This document shows, in pieces, positions 10,840 to 37,734 of a stretch of DNA of 64,000 bases. The translations under genes were made by a program, and so were the position numbers. The DNA is from Haliotis rufescens. Taxonomy: Eukaryota. Position 1 is the stretch's first letter. Each line of letters begins with the position of its first letter. The notes beneath the pieces were generated by a model. That model had not been told where the DNA came from, did no database searches, and worked only from the letters and a program-made list of their open reading frames with translations. The stretch spans positions 49,352,001-49,416,000 of the forward strand of contig NW_025964223.1 in assembly GCF_023055435.1 (NCBI RefSeq), read 5' to 3'.

Positions 10840-12530
10840 AGTGGTAAGTTTGAGTGGTAAAAATTCACGTTAGCTACGAGAGAAGCACAGAGAGCGAATG
10901 ACACTTCCCCACAGACAGCCCGGCTGATACTCCGGAGGCGCGGACGTCGGAGGAGACACCCTGCTTGTTGTGGCTGATAGCTGCACGCTTACAAGCGCGT
11001 GTGCTTTTTCGTGTATTTGTATCCGAATAATCACTTATTAATCAAGGAAAGTTTCAATTTCAACAATACAGTTAGGTAGTAAAAACATTTGGCTACATTT
11101 CGGTTACAATAGCAACGCTCACGGGTGAAGTTCAAAGCCACACGTGCTGTTTCCAATGAAGCGACCCAGTCTAAAATGTAGACATCGCTACTTTCAAAAG
11201 CACATTTTTAGCCTTGAGACTCAAGTTTATGCATTTTAAACGTTGCCTGTCAATTCTCAATATATCTAACTATGAAAGTAAAACACAACACTCATCAGTA
11301 TTGCCTATGATAAGCTAGAACAAGCGTTCAAACAACGACAATGAAGCACGTTTTTCTGACGACTTCGCCATTATGCAACAGAAAACATTTGACACTATAT
11401 TTCTGGAGACATAATTTTGGTCACTTCAGTTAGAGTTGAAACTAACTTTGTCATAACAAGTAAGTAACGGGGATTTTACTTTCAGGAAAACAGTCTAGTA
11501 AGACGAGGATCTCGGGACACAAGCAGCTAGGGCGCGAAGCCCCGAACAGTAACATATATACATAGGTGTTTAGATCACTCGATCGGTCGTCACAGATTAA
11601 GTCTTTTTGCCTGTCTTAATAGCACGATATTAGTAGGGGTCTTCGTCGTTTGGATGTTAATATTACCAGAACAATATAGGCTACAATGCATCAACGAAAA
11701 GTGAATGTTTCATACGAAAGGCCAGATCGAGTGAGCGAGTGTGCCGGGCCTCGTGTTAATCAGTGATCACATGTTTTTACAACGGCTAGATTTTAATCCC
11801 TGTAAATATACATCATAAATCAACAAACACAACATGTCTACTGAACCCGCTGAAAACGCGAGCATGCTGTTTTCATGGCAATGTCTGTTTACCAATGTGC
11901 GGTGTCTATATGTAGCTAAAGTTTGCCTACAGTAGTAGTAGTAGTATTATAGATTTTACGACCGCTTCAGCCGTTGGCTATTTCGCAGTCGGGGTCAGAC
12001 GGGTTTAACAATAATAAATAATAGTGGGTAATACATAAGTAATCGGCTGGCCCAAAAAAATGTAAGTTTAGGGGGGTTAAAGAAGAAAGAAATATAGTAA
12101 AGGGGTGTGAAGGGAAAAGAAGTTTAGCAGTAGTAATGTAGAGCTGAGAGAAACCTAATCTAAGGGAAGTAACTAGTGCAGAGACTTGATATAATATAAA
12201 ATCAGTTAAGCTGATATGCTAAATAATAATATGTATTATAAATGAAAAATAACAGTGGGGAAGGTGAAAAACCTATCATAAAAAGTGTGGACTTACTGGC
12301 TGGGGTAGGGAGTCAGGAGAGGGGGGGGTGGGTATAGGCCGTGCGCGTGGGAGCTGAGCTTGGGTTGGTGGCTGGTTGAACGGTCATATTTATTAGAGTA
12401 TGGATATGGGCGAATTTGTCGCGCGGACGTCGGAGAAGTCGGTCCGCGCTGAGAATTTGGATCCCGATCCTAAATTGTAAATGTGTGGGTTTTAGGCATA
12501 GCGTTTATGCTGTACTTTGTTGGGATTTTC

Positions 12531-13802
12531 CTAAAGTTTGCTTATTAGATTTGTAGTTTTAAGGAATGTAGCTATATGGGTAAATTTAGTGGTATGGTTA
12601 AAGGGATCTAGAAGGAGTTGGATGTTGTTTTTAAGCTGTGGGGGGAGAGAGTTGTAAAGTTGTGTTTGTTGTTGTTTATATTGTGAACAGTGGTTGAATA
12701 TATGGTCTAGTGTTTCAGGTGTATTGCAGTGAATGCAGTTTGGATGTGGGTGTCTTTTTTGTTTGTAGAGTGTCTCGTTTAGATTAGTTTGGCCGCTTAG
12801 CATTCTATTAATGACTTTATCTGCTAAAATGGACTTTGTGAAGTTTCGACACTTAATGACTGGTTTATTAAAGAGGGATTTTGTCAGGATTGACTTACAA
12901 TTTTGAATATTAATTTTGAAATTTTGAGATAATGTGTTTCTTTTGATTAATGATTTTATCTCGGCTTTACTGGTGGTGAATTCAATACTTGGTGATGGTT
13001 GGGTGGTGGCTAATTTTGCTGCTGTGTCTGCTAATTGGTTGCCTGTTATGCCAGCGTGTGCAGGTGCCCATAAGAGAGTTATTGTTTTGTTTGATTGTAT
13101 GAGTTTTGTGTGAATGTCTATGATATTGTTGATAATGTCTTGCCTTGATTTCGATTGTTTGTTATGAATTTGGGTTAGTGCACCTAATGAGTCTGAAATT
13201 ATAAGGAAGTTAGTGTCATTGGATATTTTTATATAGTGATATGCACATTGTATAGCCAGTAATTCAGCTGTGGTGGTATGTGTGTAGTTGGTATAGTGGA
13301 AGTTTGTGGTGATTGGTGTAGGTTGTGTGATCTGTAGGCCTAGTCCTGTTATGTCATTGTTAGTCTGTGATGCATCGGTATAGATATGGGTGTGGTTGGG
13401 CCAGTTTTGATGTATGTAGTTATTAGATATTTCCTTTTTATCAAGATTTTTAGGGTCAGGATGTGAGATGAATGTTTTGTGGAGTGAGAGGTCTGTTTCA
13501 GGGGGGGGTTTGTCATTTATGTATATGTTTTGGGGGCTTATGTGTTTGATGTTTTCTAACTGATGTATTCTTAGGAGTTTGTAGAGATGTGTAAGATAGG
13601 GGGCTAGGGTATGATTGTTTTTGAATTTCTTTAAGGTTGCAGGTCTAAGGTTGTTGTATTTAGTGATAATTTGTTTAAGGATGGGGTTTTGTTGGGCCCC
13701 AGCCCAGTAATTAAGAATGGTTTGGTTGCGGCGGAGTTGAATGGAGGTGGTTCCTGATAGAAGCTGAAGGGTATTTAGGGCTGTACCGGTTCTGGTACCC
13801 AG
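12531..13802 (-). pseudogene. Family C ORF2, C-terminal half (RNase H + CCHC)
   Basis: Manual translation gives IYTDAS, LWAPAHAGITGNQLAD and CIHC..H..C. Confidence 0.85.
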
Positions 13803-14065
13803 TTTTACTTACTTATATTAGGGGATTTTACGTGCGCTTTCCGACTGGAGCGTATTTCGCACACGGGCCCGGCCGGGCCATTTAGTGATATAAAAGGGGA
13901 AGCGAGAAGAGTGCAACCAAGGAGGGGGGTTTAGTGGTTGCTTATATAAAGTTTTGAAATTTTGAGATTCGGAAGACATGCCTTGGGGGAGTGGTTGGGA
14001 CTAAGGGAGTGTGTGGGGGTGAGTTGTTGTTTTTAGATGTTTAGTGTTGGTGGTTTAGTGAATTT

Positions 14066-17000
14066 TTAGATACGATTAATTAGGTCTGTTTTGGTTAGGT
14101 AAATGCCTAGGGCTTTGAAGTTTTCTATTTTATTTTGGGGGTTGAGGATTGCTTCTAAGGTAAGAGCTTTATTTGGATTTAGGTTGGTTTGTAATGTTGT
14201 ACGTTGGATGAGGTAGTGGGTGCAATGTAGTAGTACGTGGTCTATGGTTTCTGGGTGAGTGCAGTGTGGACACTTCCCGTTTGCGTGTTTTTTTAGTTTT
14301 AGAAGATGGTTATTTAGTTTGGTGTGTCCTGTTTGGAGTTTGGTGATTATTCTATCGATTTTTTTGGATGGATGGAGGATTTTTGGTTTGGTAAGGGTTT
14401 TTTTGAGGACTTTTATGATTTGGGTGTTTGTGTTTTGATAGAGGCTATGCCATTTTTGGGTGATTTTGTGTTTGTTGATACTTTTGATCTCTGATTTACT
14501 TATTGGTAGCTTAAGGCTTATCTCTGGTATTTTTAGGGACTGTTTAGCGGCTTGGTCGGCGTTCTCATTACCGTATATTCCTACGTGAGCTGGTATCCAG
14601 GTGAGTACTATGTTTTTGCCTGCCTCTGTTAATTTATCTATACTTTTGAGAATTTGGTTTATTAATTTGGGGCGGTTTTTGGTGTTTTTGCTTTGGAGGG
14701 CCTGGAGTCCACTTAGTGAGTCTGAGAGTATTAGGATTTTATTTTGGTTTTTAGTGTGATGGCTGTGGAGGGCCGTGGCGATACCCATGAGTTCTGCGGT
14801 GAAGATAGATTGGTTGTTTGGGAGTCGGAAGGATTGCGTATTTCTTATTGGTTGGGCTATGTGGACTCCGAAACCTGTGTGATTTGTGAATGGATCAGCA
14901 GATCCATCTGTGTAGATGTGGCACCAATTTGGCCAGTTTTGATGTATGTAGGCTAGTGAGGTGGATTTAGCTATGTTAGGGTCAGTTTGTTTGTTTATTG
15001 TTTTGGCTAGGGAAGTGTCTATTTTGGGGATTTTAAGTTTTGGGGTGAATACGTTGGATTTTTTGCAGTTTTGTTGTAGGTTCCCTATTTGGTGTTCGTT
15101 GCGGTAGTTTATAATACGTTGGGAAATTGGAGTGAGTAGAGGGTGTTTCCTAGTTAGTGCCTGGTTTTTGGGACGTATGTTTAGGTTTAGGAGATTTTGT
15201 AGAAGAGGGTTTGATTGAGAAGCTGCCCAGAAGTTTAGTGTTAAGTGTTGCCTACGTAGGTTTAGCGGCATTTCTCCTGTGAGGGCCTGAAGTGACGTAA
15301 GGGAGGTGCCTTGTTGGGTACGTGTGACTAATTTGAGGGCTTGGTATTGGATTGAATCTAGTTTTTTGGTTAATGTTTCGTTTAAGGTATCGTATATGGC
15401 ACAGCCGTAGTCTAGTTTGGATCTGATTAGGGATGTATAGAGGCTGAGGAGGGTATCTTTAGAGGCACCCCAGTTGGAGCCGGTTAGGCATCTTAGTGTG
15501 TTTAAATCTTTGCTACATCTTGTGGTTAGGTTTTGGACGTGGGCATCCCAGGAGAGATGTTCGTCGAATATTAGTCCTAAGAATTTAGTTTGTTTCTGAA
15601 ATTGGATTGGTTTGTTGTTTAGTTTAAGGGTGGGGGTGGCCCGTGTCATATTTTTATGTTTAAATACTATTCCTGTGGTTTTTTCAGTGTTTAGGGAGAA
15701 CCCCCATTTATCGGCCCATTGTTGTATTTTGTTTAGTGATTTCTGGAGTAAGTCCTGGGATGTTAAAATACTTTTAGAACGGATCCAGAGGGCTCCGTCA
15801 TCTGCAAATTTGGAAGTATTTATTTTAGGGGATAAGCCATCAAAGAGATCGTTTATCATTATGTTGAATAGTGTGGGGCTAAGAATGCTGCCTTGGGGTG
15901 TGCCGTTTTCTAGTGGACACTGGTCCGACAAGGCCTGGTCTATACCCACTGTGATTTTACGGTTTTTAAGGAAACTTTGGATGTAGTTTATGATTTGACC
16001 TTTTAGTCCTATTTTTTTAAGTTTTTGGATTAGCCCGTTGTGCCATACCATATCGAAGGCTTTGGAAAAGTCCAGAAAGATGCCTGTAGTATATTGTTTA
16101 TTTAGTTGTCCTGTTTTAATATCCTGTTCTAGACGTGCTAGGTTATCTAGGGTTGAGCGGCCGGGAGTAAAACCGCTTTGGTCTGAATTAATTATATTAT
16201 TTTGGGTTAAGTAGTGTTGGAGTCTATTTTTTGCCATGGATTCCATTACTTTGCATAGGTTAGAGTTGAGCGATATTGGCCTATAGGAGTTGGCTTGGTT
16301 GGCTGGCTTACCGGGTTTAGGGATGGGGATAATGAGAGCTTCTTTCCAAGGATTTGGAACCTGGCCGTTTAGATAAATTAGATTATAGAGTTTTAGTAGT
16401 GACTGGAGTAGTTTGGGCGGGAGTTTTTTGATTATTTGGTAGGAAGTTAAGTCTAGACCTGGGGCTGTTCCTTTTTTCCTATTTTGAAGTACGTGGTTTA
16501 GTTCTTCTATTGTGTACGGTTGGTTTATTTCTAGGTTGTTATTGTTTGGTTCTTGGATAGGTTTGGTTTCTGCCTGGAGTTTTTGTTTGAATTTATGGCT
16601 GAAGTTGTTATTGCTACTTATTGCCGAAAAGTGGTTTGCTAGGTTATTTGCTTTTTCGCTGGGAGTATTTGAGTTGTTTATGTTAGGCGTTTTTTTTTGT
16701 TTTTTTAAGCCTCTGACGGCGTGGATTTTGCGCCAGACTGTTCTGGCATCTGTGCGATTATTTAGTCCCTCGCAGAATTTTTTCCAGTCTCTGGTTTTTG
16801 CTATTTTGACTAGTGTTTGGACTTGGTGGTTTAGTTGGTGAGCTACCGGTATGTGATTATGGTCGCGTTTGGCTTTATTGAAGGCTGATTTACGTTTTTT
16901 CCTAGTTTGTTCTATTTCCTCGTTCCACCAAGGTACCGAGGGCCTACCTGATTTATTTGGTTTTTTGAAAGGGATTGCGCTTTTGGCTGTGTTAATTATG

Positions 17001-17827
17001 AAGTTGGTTAAGTTCTGGCAGTATATTTCTGGGTCATTATTTTCTATGTTTTGTAGGTTTACTTGATTGCAAATATCTTGGAATTTGTCCCAGTTAGCTT
17101 TATTGTAATTGAATTTGGGCTCTGAGCTTTCAGTTTGGTGGGGGACGTTAGTATTTCCTATGGTTATATTTATTGGGAAGTGGTCACTTCCTAGGGGGGC
17201 GTCGTGAACTTCCCATTGTGTGCTTTGAGCTAGATCTGCTGTGCAGATTGTTAGGTCGATAGCCGACATGTTGTTATTGCTTTTATCGTATCTAGTGGGT
17301 TGGTTATTATTTAGAAGTACTAGATCGTTGGCCTCTATCCATTCTGAAATTAGTTTGCCGTGGTTATCTAGTTTATCCCCCGTGCCCCAGGAGCGGTGGT
17401 GGGCGTTAAAGTCTCCTAAGAAGATGGATGATTTGGTGCTTAGTTGTTTGAGAGTATTTAGATCCTCCGGTTGGATTTTTTGTTGTAGCCAGTGGTAGAT
17501 ATTTACGATGTTTATTTTTTTGTTTTTTAAGGTGATTTGGACGCCATTGGCTTCTAGGTTTGGGGTATTGACTAAGATTTCTTCGTAGTTTATGTCCTCA
17601 CGGATAAGTATAATTAGGCCTCCCGATGCTCTTAGTGTTTTTGATTTAGGTCGGTCTAGTCTGACTGTGTTATAGTTTGGAAGGTTAAATTTGGATTTGC
17701 TTGAAAATTTGGTTTCCTGGATACACGCTACATGTGGTCCCTGTTTAAGTTTAAATCTAGCTTTAAGTTCGTGGCTGTGGGAGTTAAGCCCGTCCGCATT
17801 CCACTGGAAGATATTTAGGCCTGTCAT
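14066..17827 (-). CDS. Family A ORF2, intact: AP endonuclease, RT, RNase H, CCHC
   Basis: IFQWNADG, CIQETK, LGDFNAHH, AIDLT, SDHFPI (APE); KFADD (RT); YTDGS/GNENAD (RNase H); 1253 aa. Confidence 0.96.
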   Translation of the reverse strand: MTGLNIFQWNADGLNSHSHELKARFKLKQGPHVACIQETKFSSKSKFNLPNYNTVRLDRPKSKTLRASGGLIILIREDINYEEILVNTPNLEANGVQITLKNKKINIVNIYHWLQQKIQPEDLNTLKQLSTKSSIFLGDFNAHHRSWGTGDKLDNHGKLISEWIEANDLVLLNNNQPTRYDKSNNNMSAIDLTICTADLAQSTQWEVHDAPLGSDHFPINITIGNTNVPHQTESSEPKFNYNKANWDKFQDICNQVNLQNIENNDPEIYCQNLTNFIINTAKSAIPFKKPNKSGRPSVPWWNEEIEQTRKKRKSAFNKAKRDHNHIPVAHQLNHQVQTLVKIAKTRDWKKFCEGLNNRTDARTVWRKIHAVRGLKKQKKTPNINNSNTPSEKANNLANHFSAISSNNNFSHKFKQKLQAETKPIQEPNNNNLEINQPYTIEELNHVLQNRKKGTAPGLDLTSYQIIKKLPPKLLQSLLKLYNLIYLNGQVPNPWKEALIIPIPKPGKPANQANSYRPISLNSNLCKVMESMAKNRLQHYLTQNNIINSDQSGFTPGRSTLDNLARLEQDIKTGQLNKQYTTGIFLDFSKAFDMVWHNGLIQKLKKIGLKGQIINYIQSFLKNRKITVGIDQALSDQCPLENGTPQGSILSPTLFNIMINDLFDGLSPKINTSKFADDGALWIRSKSILTSQDLLQKSLNKIQQWADKWGFSLNTEKTTGIVFKHKNMTRATPTLKLNNKPIQFQKQTKFLGLIFDEHLSWDAHVQNLTTRCSKDLNTLRCLTGSNWGASKDTLLSLYTSLIRSKLDYGCAIYDTLNETLTKKLDSIQYQALKLVTRTQQGTSLTSLQALTGEMPLNLRRQHLTLNFWAASQSNPLLQNLLNLNIRPKNQALTRKHPLLTPISQRIINYRNEHQIGNLQQNCKKSNVFTPKLKIPKIDTSLAKTINKQTDPNIAKSTSLAYIHQNWPNWCHIYTDGSADPFTNHTGFGVHIAQPIRNTQSFRLPNNQSIFTAELMGIATALHSHHTKNQNKILILSDSLSGLQALQSKNTKNRPKLINQILKSIDKLTEAGKNIVLTWIPAHVGIYGNENADQAAKQSLKIPEISLKLPISKSEIKSINKHKITQKWHSLYQNTNTQIIKVLKKTLTKPKILHPSKKIDRIITKLQTGHTKLNNHLLKLKKHANGKCPHCTHPETIDHVLLHCTHYLIQRTTLQTNLNPNKALTLEAILNPQNKIENFKALGIYLTKTDLINRI

Positions 17828-17877
17828 TATTTGGGCTTTTAGTGTTTGGAGATTATGATTTTGGTTTAGGTTTTAAT

Positions 17878-19528
17878 TTATAGTCCTGCGGTAGCTAGGG
17901 TGTAGCTTGCGTAGAATTCTGGGTAGGTTTGGGTTGTAAGATTTAGTCTACGAGCTACTTGGTGTAGGTTAGTGGCTTTAATGTCTGGTTTGATTTCTTT
18001 CAGCAGGTAGAGTAGAAGGATTGTGAAGTTATTTAGTTGGGTATTTAAGGGTGTTTGGGGTTCAGGTTGAGTTTGAGGTTTGCGTTTGCGGTTTTTGAGA
18101 TTTTTGGGGGCCGACCGTGTTATATCATTTATGTTAATCTGAGTTTCGGTTTGGGAGTCATCTAAGTTAATTAATGTCCTCACTATCCATGGGAGTTGTT
18201 TGAGTGTTTGGTTGTGTCGTGCTGGGTATTTCAATGGGTTGAGTTATGTTTGTGTTTTCGGGTGTTGCTTGCTCGTGTCCGATTGTTGTTGCCCTGGTGG
18301 CTGTGGATTGTATGGTGTTTGGGTGGGATATGGCGGGTATGGTGAGTTTTGGTTTGCGTGCGGGAGTAGATGCAAGGACTGGTTTGGGTGTGGCGAATGT
18401 TGGCGGGTAGTGTGGGGTTTGGGTGTTTGTGGCTGTTGCGTGTGGTGTTTTCATGGGGACGCCGTCAAACGGGCTCTGTAGGTGTGGTTCGTTGTTTGGT
18501 TGTGGTGTGGGTAGCAAGGGTGTTCTTGGATGCTGTGTCAGTTTTCGTGTTTGTAATTTGGCCGAGTCGATGTCTATGTGTCTGTTGGCCTGTTGGGTGA
18601 GGGTGTGTTTGTGGGGGCATTTGTTGGATAGTGAGGAGTGATTGGTTGTTTTGCAGTGAATGCACCAGGGAGTGCAGGATCCTGGACATTGAGGTTGAGC
18701 GCAAGTTCTACATTTAGTTTTTTGATATTTACAGTCGTTAGCGGTGTGGTTATATTGAAGGCAGTTAGTGCACTGTTTAACTTGTTTGATGTAGGGTTTA
18801 ACTTCTAATTTAGATGACGCTCCGAAGGAGATGTGTTTAGGGGCTACTGGATATTTATCTGATTTTTGGAAGTTTATGATGACTATTGGCGTGTTGGTTA
18901 TTCTACCGTTCCTATTTGAGGTAATTCTCCTAGTGCTGGTTATTTTAGGTTGGAGGGTGTCTGTGTTAAGATTTGCTTCGTTACTGTATAATTCTAGGTC
19001 TTCCTCTGACTCTCTAGGGTTTACTCTGATTACTCCTCTAGTGTATAGTTGCCAGTTTGGGGTTTGGTGGGTTACTGTGTATTGAAAAATTTCCGTTATT
19101 TTTTTGGCTGCATTAAGTGAGTGTTGGTCCGGAAAGATGATTTGAAATCCTTTGTGAGCTTCCCTGATTTTATCGAAGTGTATTTTTTGTTTTTTAAACC
19201 ATAGTCCTACTTTATTAGCGGTGAGTACCTTACTTAGTGTGTTAATGGGGCCAGCCGCGCAGAAGTAGAGAGCGAACGTGACCATGGATGCAGGGATGGA
19301 AGGTGATGTGGGTGTTGTGTTTGAAGCGTCCAACTTCCGTTTTTTGGGGTTTGTTGTGGTTGCGGGCGAATCCGAAGTTTTGGTAGGAGAAGCGACTGTA
19401 GTTGGCTTTCCGAATTCGTGTGGGATGAGGGTTTCAGGTGTCCGATCGGAGGTGTTGTGGGCCTCCGATGGTGTGGGTGTCTCTGTGCAGTGGATGTCTG
19501 CCTGGGTGATTATACGTGTGTCGGCCAT
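17878..19528 (-). CDS. Family A ORF1 (gag-like, three Cys/His knuckles), frameshifted near 18170
   Basis: QCTNCLQYNHTANDC, CRTC and CIHC..H..C. The C-terminus (..TLATAGL) is in another frame, whereas it is continuous in the A' copy. Confidence 0.88.
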
Positions 19529-20019
19529 GTCTGTGGTTGTGCGTAGGTTGATGTAGTGTGTTTAGGTTTTGTTTGGGGGGAGGAGAGTGAGCTGAGCTTA
19601 AGAGGGGCTTTTGTGTGTAGAGTGGGTGACTGGGTGAGTGGTGTTTGGCTGGCTTCTGCGCTGTTTGGGTTTGTTGGTGAGTTTGTTTATTTAGTTAGGA
19701 GATTTTTTGAGGGTTGGTGTTTTAAGTGGGCTTGGGGGTGAGTTACTTTTGCCTAAGTTTGAAAGGGTGTGTTTGGATAGTAACTAAGGGATTTGTGGGT
19801 TTGGTATTTTAAGTGGGCTTGTGTGTGATTGGTTTTAACCTAAATTGTATGGGTGTGTTGTGATAATTACCGAGGTGTTGCTCTTGGGCTGGCTATCAGT
19901 GGAACTGTGCTGGCTTGGGAGGCTTGCTGGGTGAGGTTGGCTTGGTGGCTGGATGGCTTGGGTTGCTTCGTAGGCTGAGGAGGTGTTGCTAGCTTGGAGT
20001 ACAAACAAATCTTAGTCAA

Positions 20020-21830
20020 TGGTACCCAGGGCTATCTTTAGAGCTTTATATTGAATGGAATTTAGTTTGTTATTAAGAGTTTCTGAGATGGAGCTGAGGA
20101 CCGGGGCAGCATAGTCAATCTTAGATTGAATTAGTGACTTGTATATATTAAGCAGTGTTTGTTTGTCAGCGCCCCAATCAGTGCCGCTGATGGCTCTCAT
20201 TAAATTTAAGTCTTTTTGACATGATGTGACCAAATTATGAATATGGGGGGCCCATGTTAGGTGCTGGTCAAAAGTAATTCCCAGAAATTTGGCTTCCTTT
20301 TTGAATGAAATGGTTTGATCGTTAAGGGTGAGTTTGGGTGTGCAATTTGGCTTATGTCTATTTTTGAAAAGTAGGCCGATGGTTTTATTAGTATTAATTT
20401 GGAATCCCCACTGGGTTGCCCAGAGTTCTATGTGTTTCAGAAGGGGTTGAATTCTTTTTTGGATCTCTTTTATAGATGTTGACGACGTCCAGAAGGAAAT
20501 GTCATCTGCGAATTTTGCAGTAGTTGTTTTTTTAATTTTAGGTGGGAAAATGTCGTCAATCATAAAATTAAAAAGTGTTGGGGAGATTATACTGCCCTGT
20601 GGGGTACCATTGTCTAAAGGATGTGGGTCAGATAGGATGTTGTTGGTTTTAACTGTGATGTTTCTGTCTGTTAGGAAAGAGTGTATGAAATTTAGGATTC
20701 TACCATCTATGGCTTTTGCTTTAAGTTTTTGGATTAGGCCATGATGCCAAACCATATCAAATGCTTTACTAAAGTCTATGAAAATGGCCACAGTATATTG
20801 TTTTTGGGCGAGTGCTGTTTTAACGTCATGTTCTAAATGTAAAACGTGGTCTAAAGTTTGTCGGTTTGACATAAAGCCACTCTGGTCCTCATTAAGTAGT
20901 TTTTGGGAAGAAATTTGGAATTTTAGTCTATTGTTTATGACGGATTCCATTATTTTACAAATATGGGAGGTTAACGAGATAGGGCGGTAGGAATCCGGTT
21001 CTTTGGGGGGGTTGCCTGGTTTGAGAACCGGTACTACCAAAGCTGTTTTCCAAGCATGGGGGAGGGAGCCTGAAGTCCAAATTTGATTGAATAATTGGAG
21101 AAGAAGTTTTTGAATTTTAGGGGGAAGGTGGTTTAGGATAGTATAGCTAATATTGTCTGTGCCTGTGGCTGGGGCTGTATTTTTGTTATTGATGGCTGTT
21201 TGTAGTTCATGTATGTTTATTATTTTATTGTATGACATGCTTGTGAGGGGTGGTCTGGGGGAATAAGTGGGGTGATTTTTAATAGTGTCTTGCATAATGG
21301 GGGTGTGGTTGGCGGAGCTGCTAGTGGCCGAAAAGTGAGCAGCCATGGCGTTAGCCTTTTCTCTATCTGTATTTAGATTAGGGAAGGATGGGGCTGAGAA
21401 GGTTTTTGAAGTGCCCTTTATGGCTTTAAGTTTTTTCCATAAAATTTTGGTATTTTGTTTCCCCATTTTCAAGGAACTGGTAAAAGTTTGCCAATGTTTT
21501 CTTTTGGCTGCTCTTATAAGTTGTTTAGTTGAGTTTCTGAACTGTTTTGCCAAGGGGAGTTTGGTTATGTCCCGCTTGGCTTTATTAAGTGCCTTTTTTC
21601 TAAGTTTTCTAGAATTATCTATTTCTGAGCTCCACCAGGGGACAGTGATATGGTGCGGTGAAGTTTTGACTGTTGGAATGCATTGGAGGGCTATATTGTG
21701 AATTTTGTTTGTGAAGTTTGTATTGAAGATGTCGTTGTCAATGTTGTGTATATTTTGTATGTTTATTTGATTGCAGAGTATGTGGAATGTTTTCCAGTCA
21801 GCCTTTTTAAGATTGAACTTGGGTTGCTGG
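20020..21830 (-). pseudogene. Family C ORF2, N-terminal half (RT)
   Basis: YRPISLTS, DFSKAFD, GTPQGSIISPTLF, KFADD, WGADKQ. Confidence 0.9.
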
Positions 21831-21832
21831 GA

Positions 21833-36515: not shown

Positions 36516-37734
36516 TTTTGCTATGCGATTCCCACTTTTTTTCTTTTTCGACCATAAGGTGCACTTGACTCATTCACATCTGATGTAATCATACACTTTT
36601 ATTTCCTTGTAAATGGCCCCACTCATGCATGTCTGCTCAAAGAAATAGCTGCCAGCCATGTATTCTTACATACCTTTACAGAAAGGACTTTTCCACTATA
36701 CATGTGATCATATTCAGTTGTCAGTTCACCAAACTCGTCAACTATTCTGAAGGCATGTACGTCCTTTTCGCCACATAAAGGTGTTTGCGTGCACCGATAA
36801 TTGACTATTTTACTTACTTTCTTACTTTCAAAGCATGAATATATAATATATACATGTAAAATTATAATGTTGTTCGTGTTAAGTCTCGGCTCACATCTCT
36901 TTGCCTACACAGATAAGAAAAGGAGAAAGAGTTAGATCGTACAGAGCGCCTGTCAATAGGAGTTCACTGGCTTGCTGCTGGAAAATGTATTTTGAAAGCT
37001 GTGAGCAAGCTGATCACTGTTGACACGCTTTACAAATATGAAAAGAAACGACGCGACTGTGTGATAAACCAGCTATTTTATGTTCCCCGTTCTAGCTGAT
37101 CGCTGGCAAACGTACTTTAGACTTATTAGAAAGTATTTCCATACATTTCTCTCGCCATACAACAGGTAGATGTGACATGTTGCAGGTAGGGGGCTAGGCG
37201 AAACGCACACGACCAAGGGCGCACAACTCTTGACGCTCTATTTGAAAAGTCGTGCACAGGCGAGGCGTGTGTCGGTAAAACACCCCGTGGATGTCTGGCC
37301 TTTATCGCCGTTTTACACCTTTGAACACAACGTGCATGTGCAGCTACACACATAGGAAGTCTGCACTCAGTATATTATATATATCAACGACACTAATCGC
37401 CTCACTTTCCAACATACACCAATTTGGGGGGTTAATAAACAAGCATAACAACAGTCATTAGTGTTAAGGCACATCCCCCCCCCTCCCCACCCACACACAC
37501 ACAATAAAATCCCTGACGTACCCTTATCATCATCACCTATGTGTGTTATGTGCGTGGTGGGTGTTGCTGCCACGTTATCTCTGTTATCACGAGAACCTGC
37601 ACTTTATTACTGCTAACATACATATTTATTGTTTTGTTATCAGTGTTTTCAAGTTTTCTTTTGGGGTATTTGGATGGCCCTGAAAAGGGCCTTTGGACCA
37701 CAGAAATGTGGAGCGAAGGCGTGACAATGAGAGC

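Follow-up and report, generated by a model that had tools for sequence, protein, structure and literature searches.

The 3' untranslated regions (UTRs) of several diverged LINE families in the abalone Haliotis rufescens carry a short two-block module that is very probably a selected copy of a histone promoter core. In the window, by which we mean the whole stretch of 64,000 nucleotides analyzed here (contig NW_025964223.1, positions 49,352,001 to 49,416,000), this module lies at 12421-12470 on the minus strand, within a truncated element referred to as LINE D. The module, found in a clade of RNase H-bearing (I-group-like) LINEs, would descend as a copy from the core of the host H2A-H2B bidirectional promoter, and its main block would correspond to a proximal element common to the H1, H2A-H2B, and H4 promoters. 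We give an even chance to the proposal that this captured core has been kept as a putative DNA site for a histone-gene factor, probably the HINFP orthologue.

The main block contains an 18-nt histone-promoter-type element at 12421-12438 (minus strand), which reads GCGCGGACGTCGGAGAAG on the forward strand and CTTCTCCGACGTCCGCGC on the sense strand of the LINE. The initial annotation had reported a 17/18 resemblance of this element to the promoter of the H1 genes in the same window. We re-read both sequences and the resemblance holds; the match to the H2A-H2B promoter is complete (18/18). The H1 element had been said to occur in every unit, and GCGCGGACGTCGGAGGAG was found on the same strand in nine H1 units of the window, at 2236-2253 and from 8653, 10938, 29451, 32451, 35396, 38397, 45813, and 59338 (all minus strand). 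Since the minus strand is the sense strand of the H1 gene (ORF 1574-2137) as well as of the LINE, the two copies of the motif have the same orientation relative to transcription, as had been claimed.

The motif is part of a hairpin, or inverted double site, at 12421-12449 (minus strand), with the arms GCGCGGAC and GTCCGCGC. The inverted arm GTCCGCGC at 12442-12449 closes the 8-bp stem described previously, which reaches 10 bp with an extension, and on the other strand it reads as an H4-type GGTCCGCGC site. RNA folding of the hairpin in its 71-nt context gave -23.8 kcal/mol (z = -2.3), and 7 of 200 shuffled sequences were equally stable. The hairpin starts 81 nt past the ORF2 stop of LINE D and ends 475 nt ahead of the (TAC)n tail. 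Its description as a CpG-rich island in a G-poor UTR was accurate: the sense strand of the LINE D UTR has 11.8% G, and 7 of the 22 CpGs fall in the 29-nt hairpin. Block 1 of the module (12455-12470, minus strand; sense GGATCGGGATCCAAAT) lies at a fixed distance from the motif and is conserved in six LINE sequences. Genome-wide, 60 copies of the hairpin were found at up to two mismatches.

The element that hosts the motif had been taken for LINE C, and this assignment had to be changed. LINE C proper (13805-19528, minus strand; ORF2 14066-17827, ORF1 18167-19528) ends at 13805, and the motif resides in a separate 5'-truncated copy of LINE D (11930-13802, minus strand), which comprises an ORF2 remnant (12531-13802), a 3' UTR of 585 nt (11946-12530), and a (TAC)n tail (11930-11945). 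The truncation point at 13802 abuts the 3' end of the full-length LINE C. The remnant is open over about 425 codons up to its stop at 12531-12533, contains RNase_H and zf-RVT domains, and is 36% identical to the C-terminal part of the LINE C ORF2; the reverse transcriptase (RT) of other D copies is 42% identical to that of LINE C. The domains found are those of I-group-like non-LTR elements, namely Exo_endo_phos (endonuclease), RVT_1 (RT), and RNase_H in the LINE C ORF2, RNase_H and zf-RVT in the D remnant, and an RT in other D copies. In a genome search with 13803-14700, nearly all other LINE C copies among the matches listed stopped at window position 13805, so the UTR that belongs to LINE C itself is about 260 nt long (13805-14065). 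This UTR has its own terminal hairpin, and within the window the motif was not found in it.

Motif and hairpin recur in other copies of family D but do not belong to family C, whose UTR in the window lacks the motif and whose other copies also end at 13805. Family D has 29 further loci with 83-100% DNA identity, which extend 5' into a full RT, and all 28 copies that can be aligned retain the hairpin with few changes (L027 gave no alignment across it). Present in these 28 copies and in at least five related families, the motif is ancestral to family D. Short-repeat tails, 5' truncation, and dispersal were all observed in this family, 28 copies of which end in (TAC)n tails and lie in unrelated surroundings.

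The 15-mer GCGCGGACGTCGGAG occurs 552 times in the genome, and its reversed control does not occur. By class, the occurrences comprise the H1-type 18-mer, whose 113 copies, among the matches listed, almost always lie in the H1/5S array; 199 copies of the core-histone version, located in 4.1-kb core-histone units; about 60 D-type hairpins; and a remainder in other LINEs, repeats, and single places. The hosts that are neither LINE nor histone gene comprise, besides single places, an approximately 650-bp repeat family and tandem arrays of 88-bp units. The repeat family is non-coding and carries an H1-like motif, CCTCCGACGTCCGCGCGC, near its middle (L058-L060; G000:C1:15.49 Mb, C1:87.57 Mb, and C2:45.69 Mb), and the tandem arrays, with a period of 88-89 bp, have the exact 15-mer in each unit (G000:C113:4273775-4274631 and C223:41319119-41319675). 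The 24-mer that marks the 4.1-kb core-histone unit occurs 199 times, on many short contigs.

In the H1 promoter, the element, which starts 99 nt ahead of the ATG (2137), precedes a TATC box and a cap-site-like TCATTCG sequence. The H2A-H2B bidirectional promoter contains TTGTCTTCTCCGACGTCCGCGC, 41 nt ahead of the H2B TATAAA box; this version is the one identical to that of LINE D (18/18), and the match to a D subfamily extends over 21-22 nt. The H4 promoter has TTGTCTTCTCAGAGGTCCGCGCC, a GGTCCGCGC variant, 5 nt from the TATA box. The element is absent from the H3 promoter of the core-histone unit. The histone copies lie a few to about 40 nt ahead of a TATA box and cap site; in the LINEs, the only counterpart found was a conserved TATC-like block about 14 nt downstream. 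The H1, H2A-H2B, and H4 promoters all carry variants of TGTCTnCTCnGAnGTCCGCGC (about 21 nt), with GACGTCCGC as the core and in one orientation to the gene. As judged from its recurrence in these three promoter classes, the TGTCTnCTCnGAnGTCCGCGC-type element is a shared proximal promoter element of the H1, H2A-H2B, and H4 genes in this genome. In the core-histone unit examined (L031; G000:C110:3000-11800; 4.1 kb with the genes H2B, H4, H3, and H2A), the element occupies the middle of the H2A-H2B promoter, with inverted GATC-rich blocks and CCAAT boxes on its flanks. At the end of the H1 gene lies a canonical histone 3' stem-loop (37651-37696; Rfam RF00032), a feature by which this H1, with its H1.0/H5-like globular domain start, is classed as replication-dependent.

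The promoter element of H4 genes is a binding site of HiNF-P, which recruits NPAT and Pol II (PMC5706932), and an H4 box resembling H4 site II is present in H1 promoters of the H1.0 type (PMC6027317). The abalone element is of this H4 site II, or H4 box, type and contains a candidate core, GCGGACGT, for HINFP (also called HiNF-P or MIZF). It resembles H4 site II in having GCGGACGT or GGTCCGC and in its position immediately ahead of the H4 and H1 TATA boxes, with a further copy in the H2A-H2B promoter. It differs in being longer (about 21 nt), in serving three histone classes, and in occurring in LINE 3' UTRs as well, and HINFP binding is putative here. We take GCGGACGT and GGTCCG within the element to represent the HINFP recognition consensus.

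Loci fetched around other occurrences of the motif yielded six LINE sequences in which the element lies on the sense strand, 95-190 nt past the ORF2 stop. The C-termini of their ORF2 products are 40-62% identical pairwise, apart from one closer pair (78%), and at least five LINE families are therefore represented. Alignment of the six UTRs revealed an invariant 16-nt block, TCTCCGACGTCCGCGC, in a surrounding UTR that is barely alignable. A second block, GGATCGGGATC[C/G]AAAT, is located about 20 nt upstream of the invariant one, and smaller conserved blocks follow downstream. On the sense strand, the module therefore reads GGATCGGGATC[C/G]AAAT, 16 nt, and CTTCT[C/A]CGACGTCCGCGC, about 48 nt in all, the main variant having A in place of C at one position. 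Using a pattern anchored on block 1 and TCCGC alone, we found 165 two-block modules in the genome versus none in the control, and their span is nearly always 48 nt despite unrelated spacers. In one family the motif unit is present in three copies. In another subfamily ('AAGACAG', L067), a different repeat intrudes about 50 nt downstream.

The H2A-H2B promoter also contains block 1, as CGGATAGGATCGAAAC. There, as in the LINEs, it precedes the motif and has the same orientation; the spacer is 23 nt versus 16 nt in the LINEs. The H2A-H2B intergenic region and two of the LINE families align locally over about 77 nt. Considered alone, the block 1 match has p = 0.005-0.01, and about 0.1 for the families with the C variant. 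The two blocks that the LINEs have kept are the two that are shared with the histone promoter, which is what would be expected of an old copy of a promoter core that is subject to the same constraint, or bound by the same factors, in both places. The earlier proposal that the element had captured or mimics a histone promoter site gains from these data: the identity to H2A-H2B is 18/18, the second arm is an H4-type variant, block 1 is shared, and the motif is invariant in at least five families. We are accordingly confident that selection has preserved the module as a copy of a histone promoter core.

Taken by itself, the window gave weak, suggestive evidence for the H1-LINE match. When one 3-kb unit was compared with the inserted DNA in full (37.6 kb), 39 of 200 dinucleotide shuffles contained a match of 17/18 or better, and restricting the comparison to the 585-nt UTR reduced this to 17 of 5000. 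A chance resemblance, or a neutral passenger sequence, is in line with the window-wide shuffles; it is untenable because of the genome-wide counts, with 552 occurrences of the 15-mer against none in the reversed control and 165 two-block modules against none. The complete identity to a second histone promoter and the invariance of the element among LINE families with 40-62% protein identity also contradict it. The data have already refuted this reading, and we assign it almost no probability.

Conservation of the hairpin is more limited than that of the motif. The complementary 5' arm is present in family D and several relatives, is lacking in L053 and L054, and is reduced to a 4-5-bp remnant in L055-L057; the motif is kept in all of them. 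Hence, the hairpin is conserved throughout the alignable copies of family D and is not universal, and its absence from two and reduction in three of the six sampled copies indicate that it is lineage-specific.

Outside this genome, the two-block pattern had no match in the metagenome scans. The 16-mer was found in metagenomes only on unrelated, bacterial-looking contigs, 118 of 120 of which have at least 50% G+C; the other two have unrelated flanks. A protein search for other species with the D ORF2 remnant returned only two distant matches (28-29% identity). Contigs from two other organisms span the motif region, with no difference listed at 12421-12449, in runs whose kind was guessed as RNA.

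The main rival to a DNA site is a cis element at the RNA level, in which the ORF1 or ORF2 protein, or an RNA-binding protein of the host, would recognize the block on the transcript, along with block 1 and, where a family has it, the hairpin. The element would act in packaging, template choice, dimerisation, or localisation, and the likeness to histone promoters would be the relic of an old capture. Such a role would account for the constancy of the sense orientation, the 95-190-nt distance from the stop, and the 48-nt span. Family D and its relatives have a hairpin of 8-10 bp, one family has a C-to-T substitution in its 5' arm that retains a G-U pair, and the palindromes GACGTC and GCGCGC could serve RNA kissing contacts. 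However, RNAalifold predicted only a weak helix between the blocks (-5.4 kcal/mol), in which none of nine pairs covaries and both observed changes break pairs. The missing arm in two and the 4-5-bp remnant in three of the six sampled copies do not favor an RNA structure either, and no Rfam match was obtained over 11800-14200 (E up to 1). Moreover, an RNA-level role leaves unexplained why the two blocks conserved in the LINEs are exactly those shared with the H2A-H2B promoter, and why the motif recurs in unrelated repeats.

The same LINEs possess what appears to be a true RNA element, and it behaves differently. The 3'-terminal stem-loop of LINE D (11959-11991, minus strand) is formed by the arms CGACTGC and GCGGTCG, after which come TAAAA and the tail; of its 11 pairs, 5 show compensatory changes among eight LINE tails, and it is likely the recognition element of the RT. 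No such changes were seen in the module. Because the terminal hairpin drifts while keeping its structure, whereas the module is frozen in sequence, sequence-specific recognition of the module is indicated. Terminal stem-loops of the form CCCGTCCGC...GCGGACGTTAAA end all these LINEs (window 11959-11991 and 13820-13860; L053-L057 and L061), and their arms in some families also contain GTCCGC or GCGGAC. Overall, we consider an RNA-level role possible but rather unlikely.

Two known systems bear on this comparison. The 'stringent' LINE 3' stem-loops of UnaL2, R2, and SART1 are recognized by their own RT. They resemble the motif hairpin in being hairpins in a LINE 3' UTR, but they are situated at the extreme 3' end and covary, whereas the motif hairpin lies 475 nt upstream and lacks its arm in two of six sampled copies. 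The I factor and gurken share an RNA localisation signal, and they provide a precedent for an I-group LINE carrying a copy of a cis-acting signal of a host gene. That signal is an RNA structure; the abalone module, in contrast, is sequence-invariant, shows no covariation, and matches untranscribed promoter DNA.

That the module acts on DNA through a histone-gene factor is, in our estimate, a balanced proposition. The occurrence of the motif in unrelated repeats and tandem arrays and the duplicated and triplicated sites point to a DNA site; on the other side, a 3' UTR is an unusual location for a promoter element, and the fixed sense orientation and stop distance fit a protein site at the RNA level too. 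The module in LINE DNA would be a putative platform for the factor or factors that drive histone genes, most likely the HINFP orthologue with NPAT, and might work as an enhancer or a chromatin-opening site. The identification of the factor as HINFP, which is suggested by the core sequence, is somewhat less secure than the DNA-site reading. Transcription of full-length copies could in this way be tied to the histone programme in S phase, oogenesis, and cleavage, the times at which a heritable insertion would be to the element's advantage. Family D and its near relatives have two sites arranged as an inverted repeat, and another family has three; enhancer sites, to which these may be comparable, are often multiplied in this way. 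The fuller scenario, in which a LINE clade captured the H2A-H2B promoter core to join the histone programme by way of HINFP and NPAT, S-phase or cleavage-stage expression, or the histone locus body, is put forward tentatively, and we lean against it in this specific form. In inserted copies, CpG retention did not differ between the motif (96.5%) and other CpGs (93-95%), so local protection is not indicated. LINE C is far more abundant than the module-bearing LINEs and has no module, which implies that the module is dispensable for retrotransposition as such.

Transposable element families that spread host factor sites include the B2 SINE with CTCF, MER41 with STAT1, and LTR10 and MER61 with p53. 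As in these families, the abalone LINEs carry a host factor motif that is ancestral to the element and was scattered with its copies. The known cases mostly concern LTR or SINE promoter regions, whereas the abalone case concerns a LINE 3' UTR; in addition, the abalone site is a histone-gene element apparently copied together with a second block of one promoter. In the literature searched, we found no link between LINEs and histone promoters, and no report of a histone promoter core that is invariant in the 3' UTRs of long-diverged LINE families. If the same factor binds both the LINE modules and the histone promoters, retrotransposons would have a concrete route for timing their expression to DNA replication or early development, and some 240 extra histone-type sites would be spread through the genome. 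This would also make a clean test system, with a single 16-nt block to set against the animal's own histone promoters. The analysis also defines a promoter element common to the abalone H1, H2A-H2B, and H4 genes.

The module could instead be a sense promoter within the 3' UTR, as in the Drosophila telomeric LINE HeT-A, where a promoter in the 3' UTR drives the next element. Here, the module with the TATC-like and CCAGCC blocks would start a short RNA with the LINE tail, or one that reads downstream. The resemblance to HeT-A is that the 3' UTR of a non-LTR element contains a promoter-like module in sense orientation. This orientation is that of the histone promoters, the motif is followed at about 14 and about 45 nt by conserved blocks, and head-to-tail LINE junctions are frequent (window, L013, and L066). 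HeT-A elements, however, form head-to-tail arrays, and family D copies are dispersed with unrelated flanks. A conserved TATA or initiator consensus was not found downstream of the module, and the reads gave no starts, the small-RNA run amounting to 8 partial reads and the other runs being guessed as RNA. Downstream-only copies were not in excess, with 56 such candidates versus 79 upstream at first look. SINE-like subgenomic copies starting past the motif were considered on the same counts and rejected. We regard a 3' UTR promoter as unlikely.

A use of the site by the host is slightly less plausible again. It would consist either in silencing of the LINEs by a repressive complex of MIZF/HINFP with MBD2-type partners, or in titration of the factor by the approximately 240 dispersed copies acting as decoys. 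Drosophila Hinfp has been linked to H1 supply and to transposon repression, which agrees with this idea. Yet a harmful site would not be expected to remain invariant in at least five long-diverged families, some of them active enough to include 100% identical copies, and the same site is present in highly active histone promoters. We retain the DNA-site reading as our working interpretation.

The initial annotation had further suggested that the motif might provide RNA-DNA homology to the target locus, that is, that homology between the UTR and the H1/5S array guides insertion. LINE insertions abound in the array and recur at particular positions, as such homing would predict, but the observations on family D contradict it. 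Only one of the 30 D loci, the copy of the window itself, lies inside a histone array, and the flanks of the copies are unrelated. The motif is 475 nt from the tail, at which priming occurs, and the composite insertion that contains LINE D and LINE C (11928-27442) is at unit position 990-994, about 1 kb from the H1 motif and 7-10 nt upstream of a 5S rRNA gene. The 5S gene of the H1/5S unit occupies unit positions 1001-1119, as seen at 36396-36514 (plus strand; Rfam 5S, 111.5 bits). A single target matching the 3' region of the element, as in site-specific LINEs, was not observed for family D, and other families recur at fixed sites of the window and do not carry the motif. We therefore consider homing very improbable. 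Three independent insertions (5203/8645, 41343/45750, and 57382/59301) fall between the TATC box and the cap site (unit 2938-2994), 8-60 bp away from the H1 motif, and three more lie at unit 956-1020, at or just ahead of the 5S gene; none of these elements has the motif.

The composite insertion occupies a single target, and in it the end of the full-length LINE C (13805) is separated by two bases from the start of the truncated LINE D (13802). A C-like tail followed by a truncated D-like element was seen again in L066, and a D element followed by a truncated C in L013. The recurrence of these C/D junctions suggests template switching or insertion into tails. At 13825-13905 of the window, contig depth reached 1276 and 4286 in two runs of other organisms, whereas LINE D was covered at about 10-30. 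LINE C thus has a hugely abundant GC-rich tail region, perhaps shared with a SINE.
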